Shown here piece by piece: positions 8,090-64,000 of a stretch of DNA of 64,000 nucleotides; position 1 is the stretch's first letter; each line of letters opens with the position of its first letter. The stretch is from Hyaloraphidium curvatum SAG 235-1 (taxonomy: Eukaryota > Fungi > Monoblepharomycota), in assembly GCA_025558095.1 (NCBI GenBank), contig JAIVFI010000024.1, positions 186,001-250,000 of the forward strand, given 5' to 3'. The notes under the pieces were generated by a model. It was not told the origin of the DNA, did not search any database, and saw only the letters and a program-made list of their open reading frames with translations. Position numbers and translations under genes: made by a program.

Positions 8090-11000
8090 TCACCGACCTT
8101 TGCCACGCTTTCTCTTGGGCGACGCCCCACCATCCTCGTAAGCCGATCCCGCCGATCCCGAGCCCAGATCCTCCTCGCTGTCTGTTTCGATGACCACTCT
8201 CCGCCGCGGCTTGCGCGTCGACGTGCGCACAGGCTCAGAGTCCGAGTCCGATCCGTCGTCGCCGTCGACTTCTGGAGACTCCTGGCGCCGCTTCTTCTTG
8301 GGCGGCTTAGCGAGTGCCCCCTTCTTCGGCGTCCGCTTCGGGGGCTGAACCCTCGTGGACGGCGCAACGCCTCGGGCGGGCGCGACTCCGTCTGCGGGTG
8401 CTCCCTCCTCTGGCTCCCGGTAGAACCTGGCGCCCTCGATCGTGCGCTTTCCCTTGCGCTTCTCCTCGTTCTTCCGGCGCTCCGCCTCATCTTCGTCCCC
8501 AAAATCGAGGTCTTCCTCGAGCGAGTTGGAGGTCGCCCTTGCCCGCTTCCTCTCGGCAACCTCCTTCTGGGTAGCAATCTCCTCCTCGCGCTCGATCTGC
8601 TGCCAGCCCGCGATCCCCATCCCCTCGATCCGCTCGCGAACGACCTCGATCTCGATCTCTCCGTACGGTTCCAGCTGGTTGACCCTCACGCTGCCCCGAC
8701 CGCGGGTGGCTGCAACGAGGAGGTCGTGGAAGAGCTTCGAGGCCTCCTCCTTCCGCGTCGTCTTGGGTACGACATCCGAAAAGAACAGAGTGTCGAGAGG
8801 TTGGGCGAGCAGGATGGCGTGGAGATTGCCTCCCGCCGGGACAGGTTTAGGCTGGCTTCCGCTGGGCTCTCGCTGCGGATTCGGCGAGGGAACGATCGGG
8901 CCCAATGGCCCGTCATCGTCGCCACCCAATGAACCGCCGTCTGCAAAGTCGTCCCACGGCTGCGGCCCGTCATCAATGTCCATGCTGGCAGAATCGGCGG
9001 GGGGAAGGACCGCCTTCGGCCTCCTCTGGCTGTCCCTGCTCCGCTGACTGTCCCGGCCGCGCTGGCTCGCCTTCTGGCTATCCCTCTGGCTAGCCTGGCT
9101 CAGAATCTCTCGCACCTCGGCGGTCCGGCTCTTGATCGCCCGCAGCTGGCGCTCCTTGATCCGTCCGACGAGCTCCGTCCAAGCCGGGAAAGTGGCTTCC
9201 AATTCCCTGATAGTGTAGCCGGTCGCATCGGAAAGCCAGAACTCCGCGGGCGGATCCCAGATGGAACGAAACTCGCTTTCCTCGGCGTCACCGTGGCGCG
9301 CGGCGTCTTTCCTTAGCCCGCGCGCCGGAAGAGAAAAGTCCGTATTGGACATGGTCGGCGAAGTGTCGTTGAGCCATTCCTTCAGCTCGGCAGTGGTCAA
9401 CGAGATGCGATCATCGACCGTCATGAGCGGTCCGGTGCGCTTTGCTGGGAGCGGAGCGACGAAACCCGAGAGCCGAGGCTTCTGTTCCGACTGCTGAGCC
9501 TTCTTCTGCTCGCGCTCCAGCTTGTCCAGTTCCCTCTGGAATCTGACCAGCTCCGGCGTCCCCGGTCGGTCGTATATCCCCCGACGTTCGCGGAAGTCCT
9601 CGTCGCCCCAGCCAAAGTCGATCGCTTCGTCGTCGTCTGCCGATTGGGCTCTCTGGCGTTGCTGCAGCGGGGAGCCAGGATCCGCTAAAGGCTGTCCGTT
9701 CGGACCCCTCGACGAGCGGAGCTGGTCCCCATGCACAGTTCTGAACGGGGTTATTTGCGGTGTCGGCAGACCGGCCCGCTGCATCGCCAGCTCGACCACG
9801 TTCTTGGCTGGGGGAGCCTTCGGGGTCCGGAAGGCATCGAGCGCCGCCCTGTCCACCAGCGGAGCGCGTTGGGGGCTCGTTGCAGGCGTCGCCATGCCGT
9901 CGCGCACTTCGGTGCCGGACGCGACAATTTCCTCGGCCAAGTCGCCCGTGAGATCGAACTCGGGGCCAACATCGCCCGCTTCCGAGTCGCCGCCGTCAAT
10001 GTCCTCGGGGTGCCAGTCCATGTGAACGCCGGCCGCAGTCTCCCCGGCGAGAGACTCGTCGTCGGTGGCATATGCGAGGATCCTTCTCGGATCCAAGACC
10101 CTGCTTCCGTCCTCGGAAGGAGCATCGGGCGCATCCACAAAGGCCCCAATTGCATCGGATGAGGAACCCTTTTGCGCCCCCGCTTCCTTGGCGAGGTCAA
10201 ACGACCACCAATCGTCGCCCTCGCCGGCATCCGAACCGGCTCCGATTTGCTCCAGAAGATCCTGCGTCTGGCTCAGAGCTTCGATGAGCTTCCTTTCGGC
10301 CTCCGTGTTGGCGAGCCCAATCACGTCCTTGAGCGTGATCTCCTCGCGCCGTGCGGCAATGTGAGACTGCAGCGGGGGCTCGATGTTGAGCAGCGCCTCT
10401 CCGCCGGGAATGTTGGCCAGCCGCTCGCCCGTTATGGCGCGGCGGATGGCCGGGTCCGCCAGAAGAACGTCCAAGCCTCCAAACACGGCGGAGCCGCTCT
10501 CGGCCGTCCGCCGTTTCTTTGCAACAGGCTGCCCATCCCCGCCCTTTGGGGCATTGGCGTCCTCTCCCCGCTGGCGCTTTTCGACTTCCTCTTTCCACCC
10601 GAGAAACGCGAGCCGAAGCTTCTCAATGGCGGCGTTGCAGTCCTCAAGGAGGTAGCGCGCCGAGCGAGAGTAGAGCTTGCAAAGGCCCACAAGGAGGTGC
10701 GAGACCAGCCGAAGCGTCACCGAGACATTCGATACGGACCGCCGTGCTGTCACTGGGGCGTTCTTGCGAGATGGACCAGCTGGTGCTGGTGCTTCGGTCT
10801 GCTGGGGCCCAAAAAGTCAGTAGGAGTTCGGTGCAACCTGGGGTGCCTCCGCGCCCAAAGTCCAGAGATCTGCGACCTTCTCTAAATGTTCCATCATGTC
10901 TAAGAATCCAGATTCCTGAGTGCTCGCCGCACGGAGGTCCGAGTGCTCAATCCAGCCATGCCGCACGCGACTACAGCAGCACTCGTTCCGAGATGGCAAT

Positions 11001-43836: not shown

Positions 43837-44560
43837 CGAAGCGCCCCTTGGCCCGCCCATTCCGCGGCAACCGACCGGCGCACTGGCTTCCGAGGGACAT
43901 GGAAACGATGGGAACTGGATCCGGAGGGCAGGATGGTGCACAGTGCGCGTGTTGGAACGCGCGGGGAGAGGGCTGACGGTGGCGCGGGCGGGATCCCCGA
44001 AAACCAAATGAGCTCCCCCGCGCTCTCGCCGCGTCCCCTGACCATCCGAAGCGGCGGAAAAGGAAGATAGGACGTTCTTTCAAAGTTGTGCTGGAACTGG
44101 AGTGCGGTGGAGCAGCAAAATCGGGGCCTCGCTAAGACCAACCAGCACCACCACCACCCAGGCCATCACACCGCCCCGAATCAAAACTTTGGTTCGATCC
44201 GGGTTCGAACCGGAGACCGTCTGTGGTCTCAAGCATCGCAATGCGACGCTTGTTAGACAGAAGTGATGGCCAACTACACCATCGAACCTTTCTGAATGGT
44301 GGGGAGGCCGTGGGACACTCGGACGGCAAACCTCCCGCGCTCGGGTGGTTCCCCCGCATGACCGACGCAGGCCATCGTTCCCCAATGCCTTGCGCTCCCG
44401 TTTGGACGGTTTTCCACTTCGCCAAGCATCTCCACGCCAGTCTCCCGGGTTCGGGACGCAGCGGAAACCCGCGATCGGCTTGCCCCTCGTAAAGCAAGGT
44501 GAAGGAGCGGCTGCTCAACCAGTTCGGGCCGAAATTGACCGCAGCGGGGCCAGGAGGAGA
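43837..44560. repeat. Copy 1 of duplicated tRNA-Val(AAC) unit (downstream flank + tRNA + upstream flank)
   Basis: 44213-44560 is directly repeated at 47233-47581. 43837-44212 is repeated in inverted orientation at 46808-47189. Confidence 0.93.
44190..44288 (-). tRNA. tRNA-Val(AAC) with 25-nt intron (44226-44250)
   Basis: GGTTCGA/TCGAACC acceptor stem, TGGTGTAGTTGG A box, TCTGT-CT-AAC-A^C-ACAGA anticodon arm, TCCGG-TTCGAAC-CCGGA T arm. T4 terminator at 44183-44186. Confidence 0.95.
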
Positions 44561-45305
44561 CCAGCAACGACGGTACGAATCAAAGTTATTGTTATGCCAT
44601 GCTATGCCAATAAGCAGCCAGCGAAACGTTACCGTGTAGAACCAGGCAAATCGAAGTACATATCGTGCAATTTTCGTCGTTCAAATCGCACATGAGGGCA
44701 TTGTTCATGACGTGTCACTTGGCCAAAGGCCACGCGTCGGAAACAAATAGCGTTTCATCCCGGATTCTCCTCGGGCTCAATTTTACCTTGGGCTCGGATC
44801 TGCAATCCAATCATTCATGCTAGGCTGCGCCGTCGCTCGAAGGGTTTCTAGGCAAGGGTATTGGGGTGAGACGAGAGGGAAAACGCCGATCCTCACCCAA
44901 CAGCTCGCCATGGCAGCAGCCATGGATTCCTGCAACAGATTCAGATGGTAGAGATGTCGCTCCCAGGTGATGGGGCACGTACAATCCTGTTGAATCGCTT
45001 ACGTGCGACACAGGATCTAGGGCCGTTGCTCGAGTCATATGCGATTCCTGGCGCTTGCTCCCGGCATCGATGCAGGATCTTTGTTCGTGACGAAGTGCAA
45101 ATAAGGTGCTCGCAGCGCTCGCTGGACTTTCCTCGCGAAAGTCACCTGGCGCCTCCAAGATGGGATCGTGCACAGGACGCGTCGACCAGACGCGTCGCCG
45201 CACACGTACACAGACACACCGCGTTGAGCGACAATTGTACCAGGCTCCCGTGGAACCAGAAACGCCAATCGTCTGTTGGAAGCAGGCCTCAGACCGCCAC
45301 CCGCC

Positions 45306-46649
45306 ATGGCCAGGATTGCGCGCAACGCCGACGAGATCGAAGCACTCCTGCGCTCGGGCGCCCTCGTCATCCGCCCGGACGCGATGATGTGCACGGAAGA
45401 ACGCGACCTGTGGATCAGAGCGGCGTGCCTCGCCTGCGGCCGCGCCGGCGTCCCGCTGCAGCGCTGCGGGGCCTGCCGCACCGCGCCGTACTGCTCGATC
45501 GCGTGCCAGCGCAGGAACTGGGCAGCGCACCGCGACGCCTGCGGTCTGCTGCGTCACCCGCTCGACTTCGCCTGGGCCGCGTTCGTCGTGGAGATGAGCC
45601 TGCGGCTGGGCTTCACGCACGGGCACCGCCCTCGTGCGCCGACGACCACGCAGTGCCCGGCGCTCCATGCCACCTTTGGGCACGATGGTGGCATGGTGAT
45701 CGCGGTATCCAACGCCGAATCCGATCGGACGCGCACGCTCCTGGCCGCCAGGCAGAGGGAAGGGAAGTTGTTCCCTCCCGACGCCTTTAACGCGCACGTC
45801 AGCTGGTCGCCGGACGGCGGCCTGATCACGCAGCTGGCCACGCCCGGTACCCCGGCCAGCGACGCGCAGCGCGACGCGAGGTACCTCTCTGCGAGCGAGG
45901 CCCGATCCAACGAGAGCGGGAGGATCGTGCTAGCGCTGGCTCGGGACCTGGGCATCGCGGCCGCGGCGGTGATCGCCCCGTGGTCCGTGCTCCCCGGTAC
46001 CGCGATTGCCGCTCTGCCCTGGCAGCCAGCCATCCTACCCGCCAATCTCTCGGCATGCAAGGTCAGGCGGATCGGGGACGGCCAGACGAAGCCCCAAGGG
46101 CCGGAGGAGTTCCTGCATCGCAAGGATGGCCCCGCGCCCGTTCTCAACCCCGAGGCGTTGGACCCTCGCAATCCCTCTTCCCCGCTGTACTTCCGGTCCG
46201 CTGCGCCGCCATCCGCGTACGATCCCGACGCGATTGAGGGACGCATCCCGATCTCCTCAGCGCACCCGGGCCCGTTCTTCGCCCTCCCCGGGGACGGCAC
46301 CGCCGCGCTGCTTCTCTGCACCGCGCTCCCCGACCCGTCGCCCAACCCCCTGGGGTTGGCCCCGGGGACCAGGGCGCCGATCGTCGAGGTCAACACCCAC
46401 ACCGGGGGTTTCCGCATCCTGGAGGCTGAAGGCTGGAGGTTCGGGACCGTGCCCGCCGCAGGGCTGGCAGGGTTCATGGAGGCCATGGGAGCAGTGTGCC
46501 TCGACTGCGCAAGTCCGCAGGGGCCGGCGGGGTGGAGATGGGGGAAGGGGAAGCGGGCGGTGACCGAAGAGCGCATACGGAGGTTTGGGGTCAAGAAGTG
46601 CGGCAGGAGCCCGGGAAGCCGAATCTACGAGCCGCTTCCGGTGGAGTAG
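45306..46649 (+). CDS. MYND-type zinc finger protein, intronless
   Basis: CLACG...LQRCGACRTAPYCSIACQRRNWAAHRDAC. Confidence 0.88.
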   Translation: MARIARNADEIEALLRSGALVIRPDAMMCTEERDLWIRAACLACGRAGVPLQRCGACRTAPYCSIACQRRNWAAHRDACGLLRHPLDFAWAAFVVEMSLRLGFTHGHRPRAPTTTQCPALHATFGHDGGMVIAVSNAESDRTRTLLAARQREGKLFPPDAFNAHVSWSPDGGLITQLATPGTPASDAQRDARYLSASEARSNESGRIVLALARDLGIAAAAVIAPWSVLPGTAIAALPWQPAILPANLSACKVRRIGDGQTKPQGPEEFLHRKDGPAPVLNPEALDPRNPSSPLYFRSAAPPSAYDPDAIEGRIPISSAHPGPFFALPGDGTAALLLCTALPDPSPNPLGLAPGTRAPIVEVNTHTGGFRILEAEGWRFGTVPAAGLAGFMEAMGAVCLDCASPQGPAGWRWGKGKRAVTEERIRRFGVKKCGRSPGSRIYEPLPVE

Positions 46650-46807
46650 CACACGCTGATGTAACCGGGAAGAATCCCCCAGTGGCCGCTGCACATCAAT
46701 CCAATTGACGAATCCCAAGAGCTCGAAAAGCAGCACACGACACGACTCAGATGAGCTTGTCCACCCCGACTGAGCAAAAAGAGCATATGATTGCCGACAG
46801 ACCTCTC

Positions 46808-46830
46808 CGGTTCGAACCCGGATCGAACCA
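46808..46830 (+). pseudogene. 3' fragment of tRNA-Val(AAC) (most of the T arm + 3' acceptor strand), inverted away from its 5' part
   Basis: CGGTTCGAACCCGGATCGAACCA is identical to the reverse complement of 44190-44212 and is followed by the same terminator and flank. Confidence 0.9.
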
Positions 46831-47232
46831 TAGTTTTGATTCGGGGCGGTGTGATGGCCTGGGTGGTGGTGGTGCTGGTTGGTCTTGGCGAGGCCCCGAT
46901 TTTGCTGCTCCACCGCACTCCAGTTCCAGCACAACTTTGAAAGAACCTCCTATCTTCCTTTTCCGCCGCTTCGGATCAGGTCGCGGCGGGTTGCGGCGGA
47001 AAGCACAGGGGAGCTCCATTTTGGTTTTTCGGGGATCCCGCCCGCCGCCAGTCAGCACCGCACCCCCGCGTTCCGGTAAGCGCTCCGTGCACCATCCCGC
47101 ACGCCCCGATAGAATTTCCTACGTCTTCATGTCCCTCGCAAGCCCGTGATTGGGTTAGTGGCCACGGGATTGGCCGGCGGGACGCTTCGACCGTTTCCGC
47201 AAAACGCGCCCGAACCTGGCTTCGGCCAAATC

Positions 47233-47308
47233 GAGACCGTCTGTGGTCTCAAGCATCGCAATGCGACGCTTGTTAGACAGAAGTGATGGCCAACTACACC
47301 ATCGAACC
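47233..47308 (-). pseudogene. 5' fragment of tRNA-Val(AAC), including the intron, ending at the start of the T arm
   Basis: 76 nt identical to 44213-44288; the sequence beyond is unrelated to the T arm. Confidence 0.9.
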
Positions 47309-47763
47309 TTTCTGGATGGTGGGGAGGCCGTGGGACACTCGGACGGCAAACCTCCCGCGCTCGGGTGGTTCCCCCGCACGACCGACGCAGGCCATCGTTC
47401 CCCAATGCCTTGCGCTAAGTTTGGACGGGTTTCCCACTTCGTCAAGCATCCTCCACGCCAGTCTGCCGGGTTCAGGACGCAGCGGAAACCCGCGATCGGC
47501 TTGCTCCTCGTAAAGCAAGGTGAAGGAGCGGCTGCTAAACCAGTTCGGGCCGGAATTGACCGCAACGGGGCCAGGAGGAGAGCGGAGGAGCTGCGGAAGA
47601 TGCGCCGTACTGTTGAGGGGCGCGATCCGCTTATCCACTTCGCCGCGAAAGTCTTGGTTGAAGAACCCCAAAAGCCGGAACAAGAGCGAAGAACGCCGCG
47701 AAATGGGGCAAGAAATAGCTTGACTCTAGTCCCCATTGAAACTCGCAGTCCCCTGCTAATACA

Positions 47764-48641
47764 CTAGTCGAGAGGTTGACAGTCCTCGCCTTGGCCATCC
47801 TCGATGTACTGTTTGACCGTCTGGCAAACCCACGACTTTCAGCCCCTCCCTCGAACCGTTTCCGCGCGGCACCCACCTTCATCGGACAGTACGGGTCGCA
47901 GGTCCCGTTGTGGAAGTGCAGCCAGCCCAGCTGCTTGTACGGATACGACACGTACTCCTGGTCCACGGTCTTTCCATTTTCCACCTTGTGAAGGTTTCTC
48001 ATGCTGGGTGTGAACCACCTCATGGTCTCCTTCGGGCCGCCGGGGCCGAGGTATCCCGCGCCGTTGGAGCAGCCGGGGTGGGCACGCGGGTTCAAGACGC
48101 ATTTGAAGTAGTAGTTGCCTGGGAGGGACGCTCAGTGGTGACAGACCATCACCTCCAGGTCACTTACAGTCGGTCGGCGGGTTGTCGCCGTTGCCATGGC
48201 ACTGGAGGACGCCGTTGTTCAGGCGCATCCACGCTACCTCATTACACCACGTATTCGGGAGCGTGATCCAGGTGGGTCCCTGGTTGGGCGAGAAGGGCTT
48301 GGCCGTGGTCTTCGGGGCGCCCTTGGCGGTAGTTTTTGCTGCGGCGCGCTTGCTGGTCGTCCTCTTCCGCTTCGTGGTCGTCTTCCGCTTCTTCGATGTG
48401 GTCTTCTTCGGCGCGTTCGGCTCGACGTCGGGTCCCCTGCGGTGCGCGCGTCATCGGGCGGCATCGGGAGGCAATCGAGCGGCGCGTACCGTCGACGGAG
48501 GTCGGAGAGCTCGGCGTCGGGCGCGGAGAGCTCCGTGGCGTCGCGCGGTTCGAGTTCGCCGCCGCGCGGCGCCGAAGCGACGAACGAGGCCATCGCGGCC
48601 AGCAGGGCCGCGAGGAGGACGGCGACGATGGTCGTCCGCAT
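47764..48641 (-). CDS. Small secreted Cys-rich protein with signal peptide and Lys/Thr-rich linker; 4 exons
   Basis: MRTTIVAVLLAALLAAMASFVASA signal, LRRR basic site, KKTTSKKRKTTTKRK linker, then a domain with about 8 Cys. Canonical splice sites. Confidence 0.75.
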
Positions 48642-55100: not shown

Positions 55101-55132
55101 GGATACGTGATGACCAACTACACCATTCGGAC
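55101..55132 (-). pseudogene. 5' fragment (32 nt) of tRNA-Val(CAC)
   Basis: GTCCGAATGGTGTAGTTGGTCATCACGTATCC is identical to 63825-63856; no T arm or 3' acceptor strand follows. Confidence 0.88.
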
Positions 55133-55895
55133 GGGTCGTTGCCGTCTGAAGCTGCGGCGGACCCTCCGACCACTCGCCATCCTTGCGCCGGGCCCCCGGC
55201 GTGGTCCGACGGCCCACCCGCACCCGCTCCCCTCGGCGGCCCGGATAACTCTGACAGCTGGCCCTAGAGCTGAACATCCTTGGCAATTCATGGATCAATT
55301 GTTATCGGACATTTTGTCTGACCGGCTTGGGATCAGGGCGGCAAAAGCTGGCCGGCCACGCCAGGATCGGGACTCGCTGGGCAACGGGCTGGGCATTACG
55401 TTCCGTAATCCGGTGATACCAACAGGCTACCACGGCATCTGTGCCCTCGATTTGGTTCTCTCGTCTGCATTCCCGCGGGTCGGGGGCCTCTTTCGCCGCT
55501 TGGCCAACACGGCCCGGCATGGGGATGCACCTCTCCGGCTCCGGCCTCACGCATCCATGGCGCCATTGCCGCCCTAGCGCAAGCGAGCACAACCTCGATC
55601 GATGTGCAGGATGTCGGGCGAATCTGTTTGGGATCCCAGCGGTGCGGTGGGCGATGCGGCGGCAAGGGGATCAGCGCCGAACAGCGGATGCTCGCGCACG
55701 GTGGACCATCGGGGAGGCCTGGACCCCAAAGCAGCTTCAAATGCATCTTAAAACAGGAAAATGGGCATGAATTGGTGTTTAGCGGTCTTGGCCTTCGAGG
55801 TCGAAGGGCGCACGTGTATGGTCGAGATCGCCGAGGCCAATCCCGCCCAGGTCACACAGAGCAGGCCTGTTCGCCCATCCATCAGTCCTCGACGT
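55101..55895. repeat. Left arm of ~0.8-kb inverted repeat
   Basis: 55101-55746 is the gap-free reverse complement of 63211-63856 (about a dozen mismatches by eye); diverged similarity continues for ~150 bp. Confidence 0.95.
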
Positions 55896-63059: not shown

Positions 63060-63856
63060 CATCGCAGGATGATGGATGGATGGACGGAGCCTGCTCTCCG
63101 TGACCTGGGCGGGATTGGCCCCGCCGATCTCACCCGCGCACTTTCGCCCCTCGGACTTCGAAGGAGAAGACTGGGCTGGCACCAATCCATGTCCATTCTC
63201 ATTTTCTAGGATGCATTTGAAGCTGCTTTTGGGTCAAGGCCTCCCCGATGGTCCACCGTGCGCGAGCATCCGCTGTTCGGCGCTGATCCCCATGCCGCCG
63301 CATCGCCCACCGCACCGCTGGGATCCCAAACAGATTCGCCCGACATCCTGCACATCGATCGAGGTTGTGCTCGCTTGCGCTAGGGCGGCAATGGCGCCAT
63401 GGATGCGTGAGGCCGGAGCCGGAGAGGTGCATTCCCATGCCGGGCCGGGTTAGCCGAGCGGCGAAGGAGGCCCCCGACCCGCGGGAATGCAGACGAGAGA
63501 ACCAAATCTAGGGCACAGATGCCGTGGTAGCCTGTTGGTATCACCGGATTACGGAACGTAATGCCCAGCCCGTTGCCCAGCGAGTCCCGATCCTGGCGTG
63601 GCCGGCCAGCTTTTGCCGCCCTGATCCCAAGCCGGTCAGACAAAATGTCCGATAACAATTGATCCATGAATTGCCAAGGATGTTCAGCTCTAGGGCCAGC
63701 TGTCAGAGTTATCCGGGCCGCCGAGGGGAGCGGGTGCGGGTGGGCCGTCGGACCACGCCGGGGGCCCGGCGCAAGGATGGCGAGTGGTCGGAGGGTCCGC
63801 CGCAGCTTCAGACGGCAACGACAGGTCCGAATGGTGTAGTTGGTCATCACGTATCC
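63060..63856. repeat. Right arm of ~0.8-kb inverted repeat (upstream flank and 5' part of tRNA-Val(CAC))
   Basis: Reverse complement of 55101-55895. Confidence 0.95.
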
Positions 63857-63909
63857 TTCACAACTGGTGAAATCGGATAAGGTCCTGAGTTCGATCCTCA
63901 GTTTGGACA
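63825..63909 (+). tRNA. tRNA-Val(CAC) with 11-nt intron (63863-63873)
   Basis: GTCCGAA/TTTGGAC acceptor stem, TATCC-TT-CAC-A^C-GGATA anticodon arm, CTGAG-TTCGATC-CTCAG T arm. Intron GTGAA pairs with TTCAC. T5 terminator at 63918-63922. Confidence 0.95.
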
Positions 63910-64000
63910 CGGAATTGTTTTTCAACCACCAGGGGTAAGATCTTCCTTCTGGTTGACTTTGGGACCGATCCGACGGGAATTCGCCGAGGGATGGGGGTGG

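Follow-up and report, generated by a model that had tools for sequence, protein, structure and literature searches.

The stretch of DNA analysed here, in the following called the window, comprises 64,000 nt of a contig of Hyaloraphidium curvatum SAG 235-1. An intact gene for tRNA-Val(AAC), designated copy A, is located on the minus strand at 44190-44288. It was identified with ARAGORN with introns allowed and in whole-genome pattern searches, and comprises 74 nt of tRNA sequence plus an intron of 25 nt at the canonical position 37/38; the 5' exon is located at 44251-44288, the intron at 44226-44250, and the 3' exon at 44190-44225 (all minus strand). Copy A is missed by ARAGORN when run without the intron option. 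Furthermore, Rfam yielded no tRNA in the 64-kb window at its gathering threshold; tRNAs in the window are missed by Rfam because their introns break the model. Two additional genes were called by ARAGORN with introns allowed, namely tRNA-Gln(CTG) at 10214-10490 (minus strand, intron of 180 nt) and tRNA-Ala(GGC) at 46142-46430 (minus strand, intron of 196 nt). Both calls look like false positives, and the latter lies inside the reading frame of a gene encoding a MYND-finger protein. The longest open frame of this gene extends from 45276 to 46649 on the plus strand (Pfam zf-MYND, E = 7e-9), between copy A and a second copy of the tRNA gene, designated copy B, which sits 3 kb to the right of copy A.

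Copy B is present as two pieces on opposite strands. Its 5' piece of 76 nt at 47233-47308 (minus strand) consists of the 5' exon of 38 nt with the A box, the intron of 25 nt, and the initial 13 nt of the 3' exon. Its 3' piece at 46808-46830 (plus strand) represents the last 23 nt of the gene, with the remainder of the T-arm including the B box and with the 3' strand of the acceptor stem; a TTTT stretch lies downstream of it at 46834-46837. Relative to copy A, both pieces have 0 mismatches. Thus, the original prediction of a tRNA-Val(AAC) gene split into two parts, each identical to the intact gene, proved correct in its coordinates as well as in its sequences. The gene is broken in the 5' strand of the T-stem between tRNA positions 50 and 51, and not at the intron; as a consequence of this position, the A box was kept with the 5' piece and the B box was moved with the 3' piece. 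As copy B stands, ARAGORN calls no tRNA gene and Rfam gives no tRNA match there. Upon re-inversion of 46808-47232 in silico, a gene is obtained which is identical to copy A at 99 of 99 nt and is then called as a tRNA by ARAGORN, exactly as had been proposed. The 31.9-Mb genome was searched for this tRNA-Val(AAC) with up to 3 mismatches allowed; copy A and the two pieces of copy B were the only copies found, pieces included.

The segment between the two pieces was analyzed by blastn, local alignment and a repeat search. The inverted segment has a length of 425 nt (46808-47232). Its part 46808-47189, together with the adjoining repeat arm (46797-46807), shows homology in the opposite orientation to the DNA downstream of copy A, with 98% identity over the first 169 nt and about 75% thereafter; the last 43 nt of the segment have no counterpart at copy A by blastn and local alignment. 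On the other side of the break, the 5' piece and its upstream flank (47233-47581, minus strand) are collinear with 44213-44560 at copy A. Identity is 95.7% over this entire part and 98.9% in the 183 nt closest to the break. The duplicated unit at copy A, comprising upstream flank, gene and downstream flank, extends from 43837 to 44560 on the minus strand, and the collinearity of copy A with re-inverted copy B spans about 720 nt. Identity between the copies reaches 98.6% in a central tract of about 350 nt which contains the gene, and is lower in the flanks of this tract, with 92% upstream and 75% downstream. As the collinear alignment of about 720 nt includes the old, diverged distal part, it favours inversion of a copy that was once complete. 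This collinearity ends 43 nt short of the far breakpoint at 47232; the ancestral sequence at that breakpoint therefore cannot be read from the paralogue.

We also considered whether the inversion can be dated from the identity of the pieces. The copy B pieces show 0 changes in 99 nt relative to copy A as compared to 5 changes in 253 nt of the adjacent tract (about 2%), and this difference has a P-value of about 0.14, which makes the identity uninformative as a date. The perfect identity is only weakly unexpected, and it could reflect recency or equally continuing gene conversion.

Both junctions of the inverted segment are ambiguous by 4 nt (TCTC) and lie within an imperfect inverted repeat of 11/12 nt. 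The left arm, ACAGAC-C-TCTC (ACAGACCTCTC), is located outside the inverted segment at 46797-46807 (plus strand); the right arm, ACAGAC-GG-TCTC on the tRNA sense strand (ACAGACGGTCTC), is located within the tRNA 3' exon at 47233-47244 (minus strand). The rearrangement is thus a balanced inversion with short inverted homology exactly at both junctions. Flanks matching each other as well as these do were found for 0.06% of all position pairs 425 nt apart in the window (P about 6e-4), and for this reason we regard the repeat as belonging to the inversion event. The bounding repeats had been predicted as they are found here, and they are non-random. The accompanying claim that no base was lost or gained holds for the gene itself; it does not hold strictly for the locus, where both ends of the inverted segment carry about 12 nt of gene sequence in imperfect form. 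By chance, a 12-mer has a partner of such quality about once per 2 kb of surrounding sequence, so a chance repeat that existed beforehand suffices and no design is needed. As a variant, the left arm perhaps arose in the event itself, through staggered nicks or templated fill-in, as an imperfect copy of 12 nt of the gene. Two edits within 12 nt fit a pre-existing chance repeat better than an arm created in the event.

The gene breakpoint furthermore coincides with a predicted DNA structure. The right repeat arm forms the loop and the 3' arm of a local palindrome, GAGACC-N6-GGTCTC, located at 47233-47250 and also present in copy A at 44213-44230. Together with the neighbouring intron hairpin, this palindrome is predicted to fold into a double hairpin of single-stranded DNA with -11.6 kcal/mol (z = -3.9); none of 200 shuffled sequences was as stable. 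The breakpoint of copy B is located exactly at the foot of the second predicted hairpin, which is the one formed by the palindrome.

Three public sequencing runs, X1, X2 and X3, cover the locus in the form of assembled contigs, which were aligned to 46200-47900. Such contigs drop rare variants, and X2 and X3 are shallow; moreover, the three runs share one organism label and may represent the assembled strain, so their independence is limited. The left junction is bridged by an X1 contig of 1316 nt (608 nt and 54 nt on either side) with 0 differences, and again by a contig of 134 nt from X2, a second study, with 80 nt and 54 nt on either side and 0 differences. The right junction is crossed by an X1 contig at 47142-47262 (91 nt and 30 nt on either side, 0 differences), which falls one letter short under the bridging rule; its shortness would be in keeping with a contig end at the point from which the sequence is shared by copy A. 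With the left junction bridged by contigs of two studies and the right one nearly bridged by one contig, the inversion does not stem from misassembly. The join of 46804 to 47237 between opposite strands, representing the un-inverted form, was detected in X1, X2 and X3, and all of these contigs originate from copy A. They carry the letter of copy A (A) at position 47315, where copy B is marked by G, as it is by T at 46831; those of X2 show nine further A-type differences, and the loose ends of those of X3 read into copy A's own flanks. Among the contigs of the three runs, which as noted drop rare variants, no un-inverted copy B was found. Hence, the inversion is not a heterozygous allele either, and judged by contigs it is fixed in the cultures sampled.

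Some X1 contigs skip 47821-47876 (minus strand) and, in part of the material, 47076-47142 (plus strand). X1 therefore probably represents RNA, since the skipped stretches have GT..AG and CT..AC ends. The RNA-like X1 contig of 1316 nt is aligned at 46200-46861 and extends further left into the MYND-finger gene. As this contig is continuous across the left junction, the 3' piece of copy B is probably located in the 3' untranslated region of that gene. The stretch 47076-47142 appears as an intron of 67 nt (plus strand, GTAAGC...AG) inside the inverted segment and is partly spliced in X1; copy A has no such 5' splice site at the corresponding place. The intron at 47821-47876 belongs to a minus-strand gene to the right, and the contig concerned runs left into the upstream flank of copy B. 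With X1 contigs arriving from both sides, the dead tRNA copy appears to lie between convergent transcripts of RNA polymerase II.

The A box and the B box of copy B are located on opposite strands about 0.4 kb apart, which leaves copy A as the only working gene of this sequence. Copy B is no longer recognisable as a tRNA gene and its internal promoter is disrupted; on these features of its sequence, it is classified as a tRNA pseudogene. On the tRNA sense strand, 16 nt past the breakpoint (47201-47216, minus strand), the sequence GGTTCGGGCGC is found, followed by TTTT. As compared to the B-box consensus, the first six bases of GGTTCGGGCGC match, but the A and the final C do not, and GGTTCG has a probability of about 2% of occurring by chance within 40 nt on that strand. 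With GGTTCGGGCGC and TTTT in this position, a truncated and useless RNA polymerase III transcript may arise from the 5' piece of copy B.

Partial copies of tRNA genes are frequent elsewhere in this genome. In a sample of 20 tRNA loci on 12 contigs (L008-L027), 11 loci carry a partial copy of the tRNA gene within 5 kb at E<=1e-4 as compared to 5 of 100 control 90-mers, and all five positive controls fall in two repeat-bearing loci. The density of broken partial tRNA copies, found at 11 of 20 loci, is far above what is known from yeasts. The copies are direct or inverted and cover the 5' or the 3' part of the gene. Inverted copies include 78 nt of tRNA-Thr(AGT) at a distance of 0.6 kb (L017), 69 nt of tRNA-Lys(CTT) at 0.5 kb (L018), and 32 nt of tRNA-Met at 1 kb (L015). 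A copy of 109 nt of tRNA-Arg(ACG) which is 100% identical was found 4.1 kb away from the gene (L014), and L023, L024 and L013 contain short 5' or 3' tRNA pieces in tandem, about 140-150 nt apart.

A further example is present in the window itself. The gene for tRNA-Val(CAC), with an intron of 11 nt, at 63825-63910 (plus strand) has a broken 5' twin at 55101-55135 (minus strand), stopping in the anticodon loop. The twin is located at the end of an inverted repeat with arms at 55101-55777 and 63180-63856 (677 nt, 97% identity, plus a further 65 nt at 82%), which comprises the upstream flank and the first approximately 31 nt of the gene and encloses a gene block of 7.4 kb. Across the sampled loci, the boundaries of the partial copies are scattered along the tRNA body, namely the D-arm, the anticodon loop, the variable region and the T-arm. 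In this small sample, such scattering would argue against a single-site nuclease and fit a general fragility of the transcribed tRNA body. The inversion in tRNA-Val(AAC) is one instance of this genome's habit of breaking and rearranging at its tRNA genes.

Very probably, a short inverted repeat mediated a fixed inversion at this fragile tRNA gene, which left copy B as a pseudogene. Of the two readings offered originally, the one of a recent inversion through short homology is supported, and that of a reversible ON/OFF element found no support. The inversion is real in the data of two studies, balanced, flanked by a non-random short inverted repeat, and placed at a hairpin-prone spot; additionally, tRNA fragments are enriched around the 20 loci sampled. 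We infer the order of events and the molecular mechanism as follows. A unit of about 0.7 kb, consisting of the tRNA-Val(AAC) gene with its flanks, would have been duplicated 3 kb away. Later, the central 350 nt of copies A and B would have become homogenised, with gene conversion as the probable cause. As the tract is continuous in copy A and straddles the breakpoint in copy B, the simplest order places this conversion before the inversion. Copy B would then have undergone a single inversion of 425 nt, balanced and with one breakpoint inside the gene at the foot of the hairpin-prone T-stem palindrome and the other about 400 nt downstream, at a short sequence forming the imperfect 11/12-nt inverted repeat with the gene breakpoint. 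The likely mechanism is a template switch at a stalled replication fork, or the repair of two breaks, guided by the short inverted repeat, and the tRNA gene would have acted as the fragile site.

Two other explanations concern the origin of the arrangement. Copy B may never have been complete; the gene would have been broken at 50/51 and both sides copied separately into the B site, one of them reversed, in one complex replicative event or in two events. The many partial tRNA copies with flanking DNA, direct or inverted, beside intact genes speak for this possibility, as does the fact that the two parts of copy B overlap by an imperfect 12 nt in the coordinates of copy A, as templated repair could give. 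We nevertheless consider it unlikely, since one inversion of 425 nt restores collinearity over about 720 nt, the distal part with about 75% identity points to an old, complete copy which was later partly homogenised, and two independent partial copies meeting at the same nucleotide are less parsimonious. Still more improbable, to the point of being negligible, is that the genome holds an intact copy B in which the assembler flipped the segment. Small inversions beside repeats can in principle be assembly errors and nothing else was found in favour of this explanation; the left junction is present without a difference in short-read contigs of two studies, the right junction is nearly bridged in one of them, and no contig with an intact copy B exists among those aligned.

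The original prediction had also suggested a candidate switch, in which the segment of 425 nt flips back and forth, joins or separates the A and B boxes, and thereby toggles the dose of tRNA-Val(AAC) between one and two genes. Such a switch would be consistent with the exactness of the inversion, as flipping back would restore a perfect gene with its terminator, with the continued identity of both pieces to the working gene, with the non-random repeat at the junctions, and with the presence of serine recombinases encoded in the genome, though on other contigs. We regard it as very improbable, because the contigs of the three runs contain copy B in the inverted form only, no recombinase domain was found locally, and the repeat is not recurrent. 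When the ten longest frames from 43.3 to 49.0 kb were searched against Pfam, the MYND finger was the sole match; no dedicated recombinase, as expected for an invertible switch, was thus found in these frames in or beside the element, and the genome as a whole has no match to the tyrosine recombinase family PF00589. The serine recombinase (Resolvase) family PF00239 has nine matches in the genome, all in short open reading frames on other contigs. Broken tRNA copies for which no ON state is possible are common in this genome, and to our knowledge an imperfect repeat of 11/12 nt is far shorter than the sites of known recombinases, which also counts against a switch. As contigs alone were readable, rare flipping could have escaped; flipping of copy B at low frequency, for which the process behind the broken tRNA genes of this genome may be responsible, is given an equally small probability. 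If it did occur, some of the cells would once more possess two tRNA-Val(AAC) genes, representing a eukaryotic chromosomal inversion switch acting on an RNA polymerase III gene.

The repeat was also considered as a recurrent recombination site and rejected: the 31.9 Mb contain the 12-mer 3 times, including once each in copies A and B, as compared to 2 occurrences of the reversed control pattern, which corresponds to chance level, and the palindrome GAGACC-N6-GGTCTC is absent from the three recombinase loci examined. The PF00239 matches include C9:338229-339697, C22:421710-422132, C4:373085-373513 and C34:542991-543419, and further C46:168839-169267, C9:539598-540026 and C2:639991-640415. Four matches have equal scores, suggesting a multi-copy element. 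The open reading frames encode about 196-221 amino acids with an N-terminal extension and a C-terminal catalytic domain (L028-L030), and NCBIfam provided no clear name for the matches.

Taken alone, the formation of a tRNA pseudogene through a small inversion is an ordinary kind of event; copy A remains as the organism's one working gene of this tRNA-Val(AAC) sequence. The value of the locus lies in the unusually clean, base-precise break inside the body of a tRNA gene, at the foot of a hairpin and with a short inverted repeat at its junctions, and in the paralogue 3 kb away, from which the ancestral sequence can be inferred. Moreover, the genome around it stands out for the instability of its tRNA genes, over half of those sampled having broken copies nearby. 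If the genome-wide pattern reflects an active process such as conflict between RNA polymerase III and replication, R-loops, or a tRNA-targeting nuclease, junctions of this kind would help to work out its mechanism.

Site-specific invertible switches comprise bacterial Hin, Gin and fimS as well as FLP/FRT of the yeast 2-micron plasmid. Copy B resembles them in that inverted repeats flank a segment on whose orientation the completeness of a gene depends; it differs in that no recombinase was found at the locus, the repeat is not a recurrent site, its arms are imperfect with only 11/12 nt, and a single orientation was seen.

Copy B also shares with the split and permuted tRNA genes of Nanoarchaeum equitans and Caldivirga, and of Cyanidioschyzon merolae and other algae, that one tRNA is encoded in two discontinuous parts. 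Those genes are split at intron-type positions, have complementary or circularising flanks forming a bulge-helix-bulge, and are the sole source of their tRNA (PMC3218864, PMC3978253). Copy B, unlike them, is split in the T-stem with its pieces on opposite strands, its flanks are not complementary, and an intact gene is located 3 kb away; it shows neither the intron-type split with complementary flanks nor the role of sole source of the tRNA. Trans-splicing through complementary flanks was rejected, as the duplex of the trailer of the 5' piece with the leader of the 3' piece is weaker than 98% of shuffles.

In yeasts, tRNA genes pause replication forks and are about threefold enriched at evolutionary breakpoints (PMC2675101, PMC7990762). 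The present locus is similar in that a rearrangement broke at a tRNA gene and tRNA loci are enriched for scars. However, breakpoints in yeast are mostly located beside tRNA genes, or arise via recombination between whole tRNA or Ty copies, whereas the break in copy B is inside the tRNA body and the event spans 425 nt only. Template switching in yeast makes use of short inverted repeats, from a few to about 14 nt in length (PMC11790251, PMC10766183), and a staggered-break model accounts for inversions with inverted duplications at their ends (PMC7584159). ODIRA yields inverted triplications, whereas copy B represents a balanced inversion in which nothing was amplified. In agreement with both the ODIRA/fork-stalling and the staggered-break models, an inverted repeat of about 10 nt is located exactly at the novel inverted junctions, and hairpin-prone DNA and a highly transcribed gene adjoin them.
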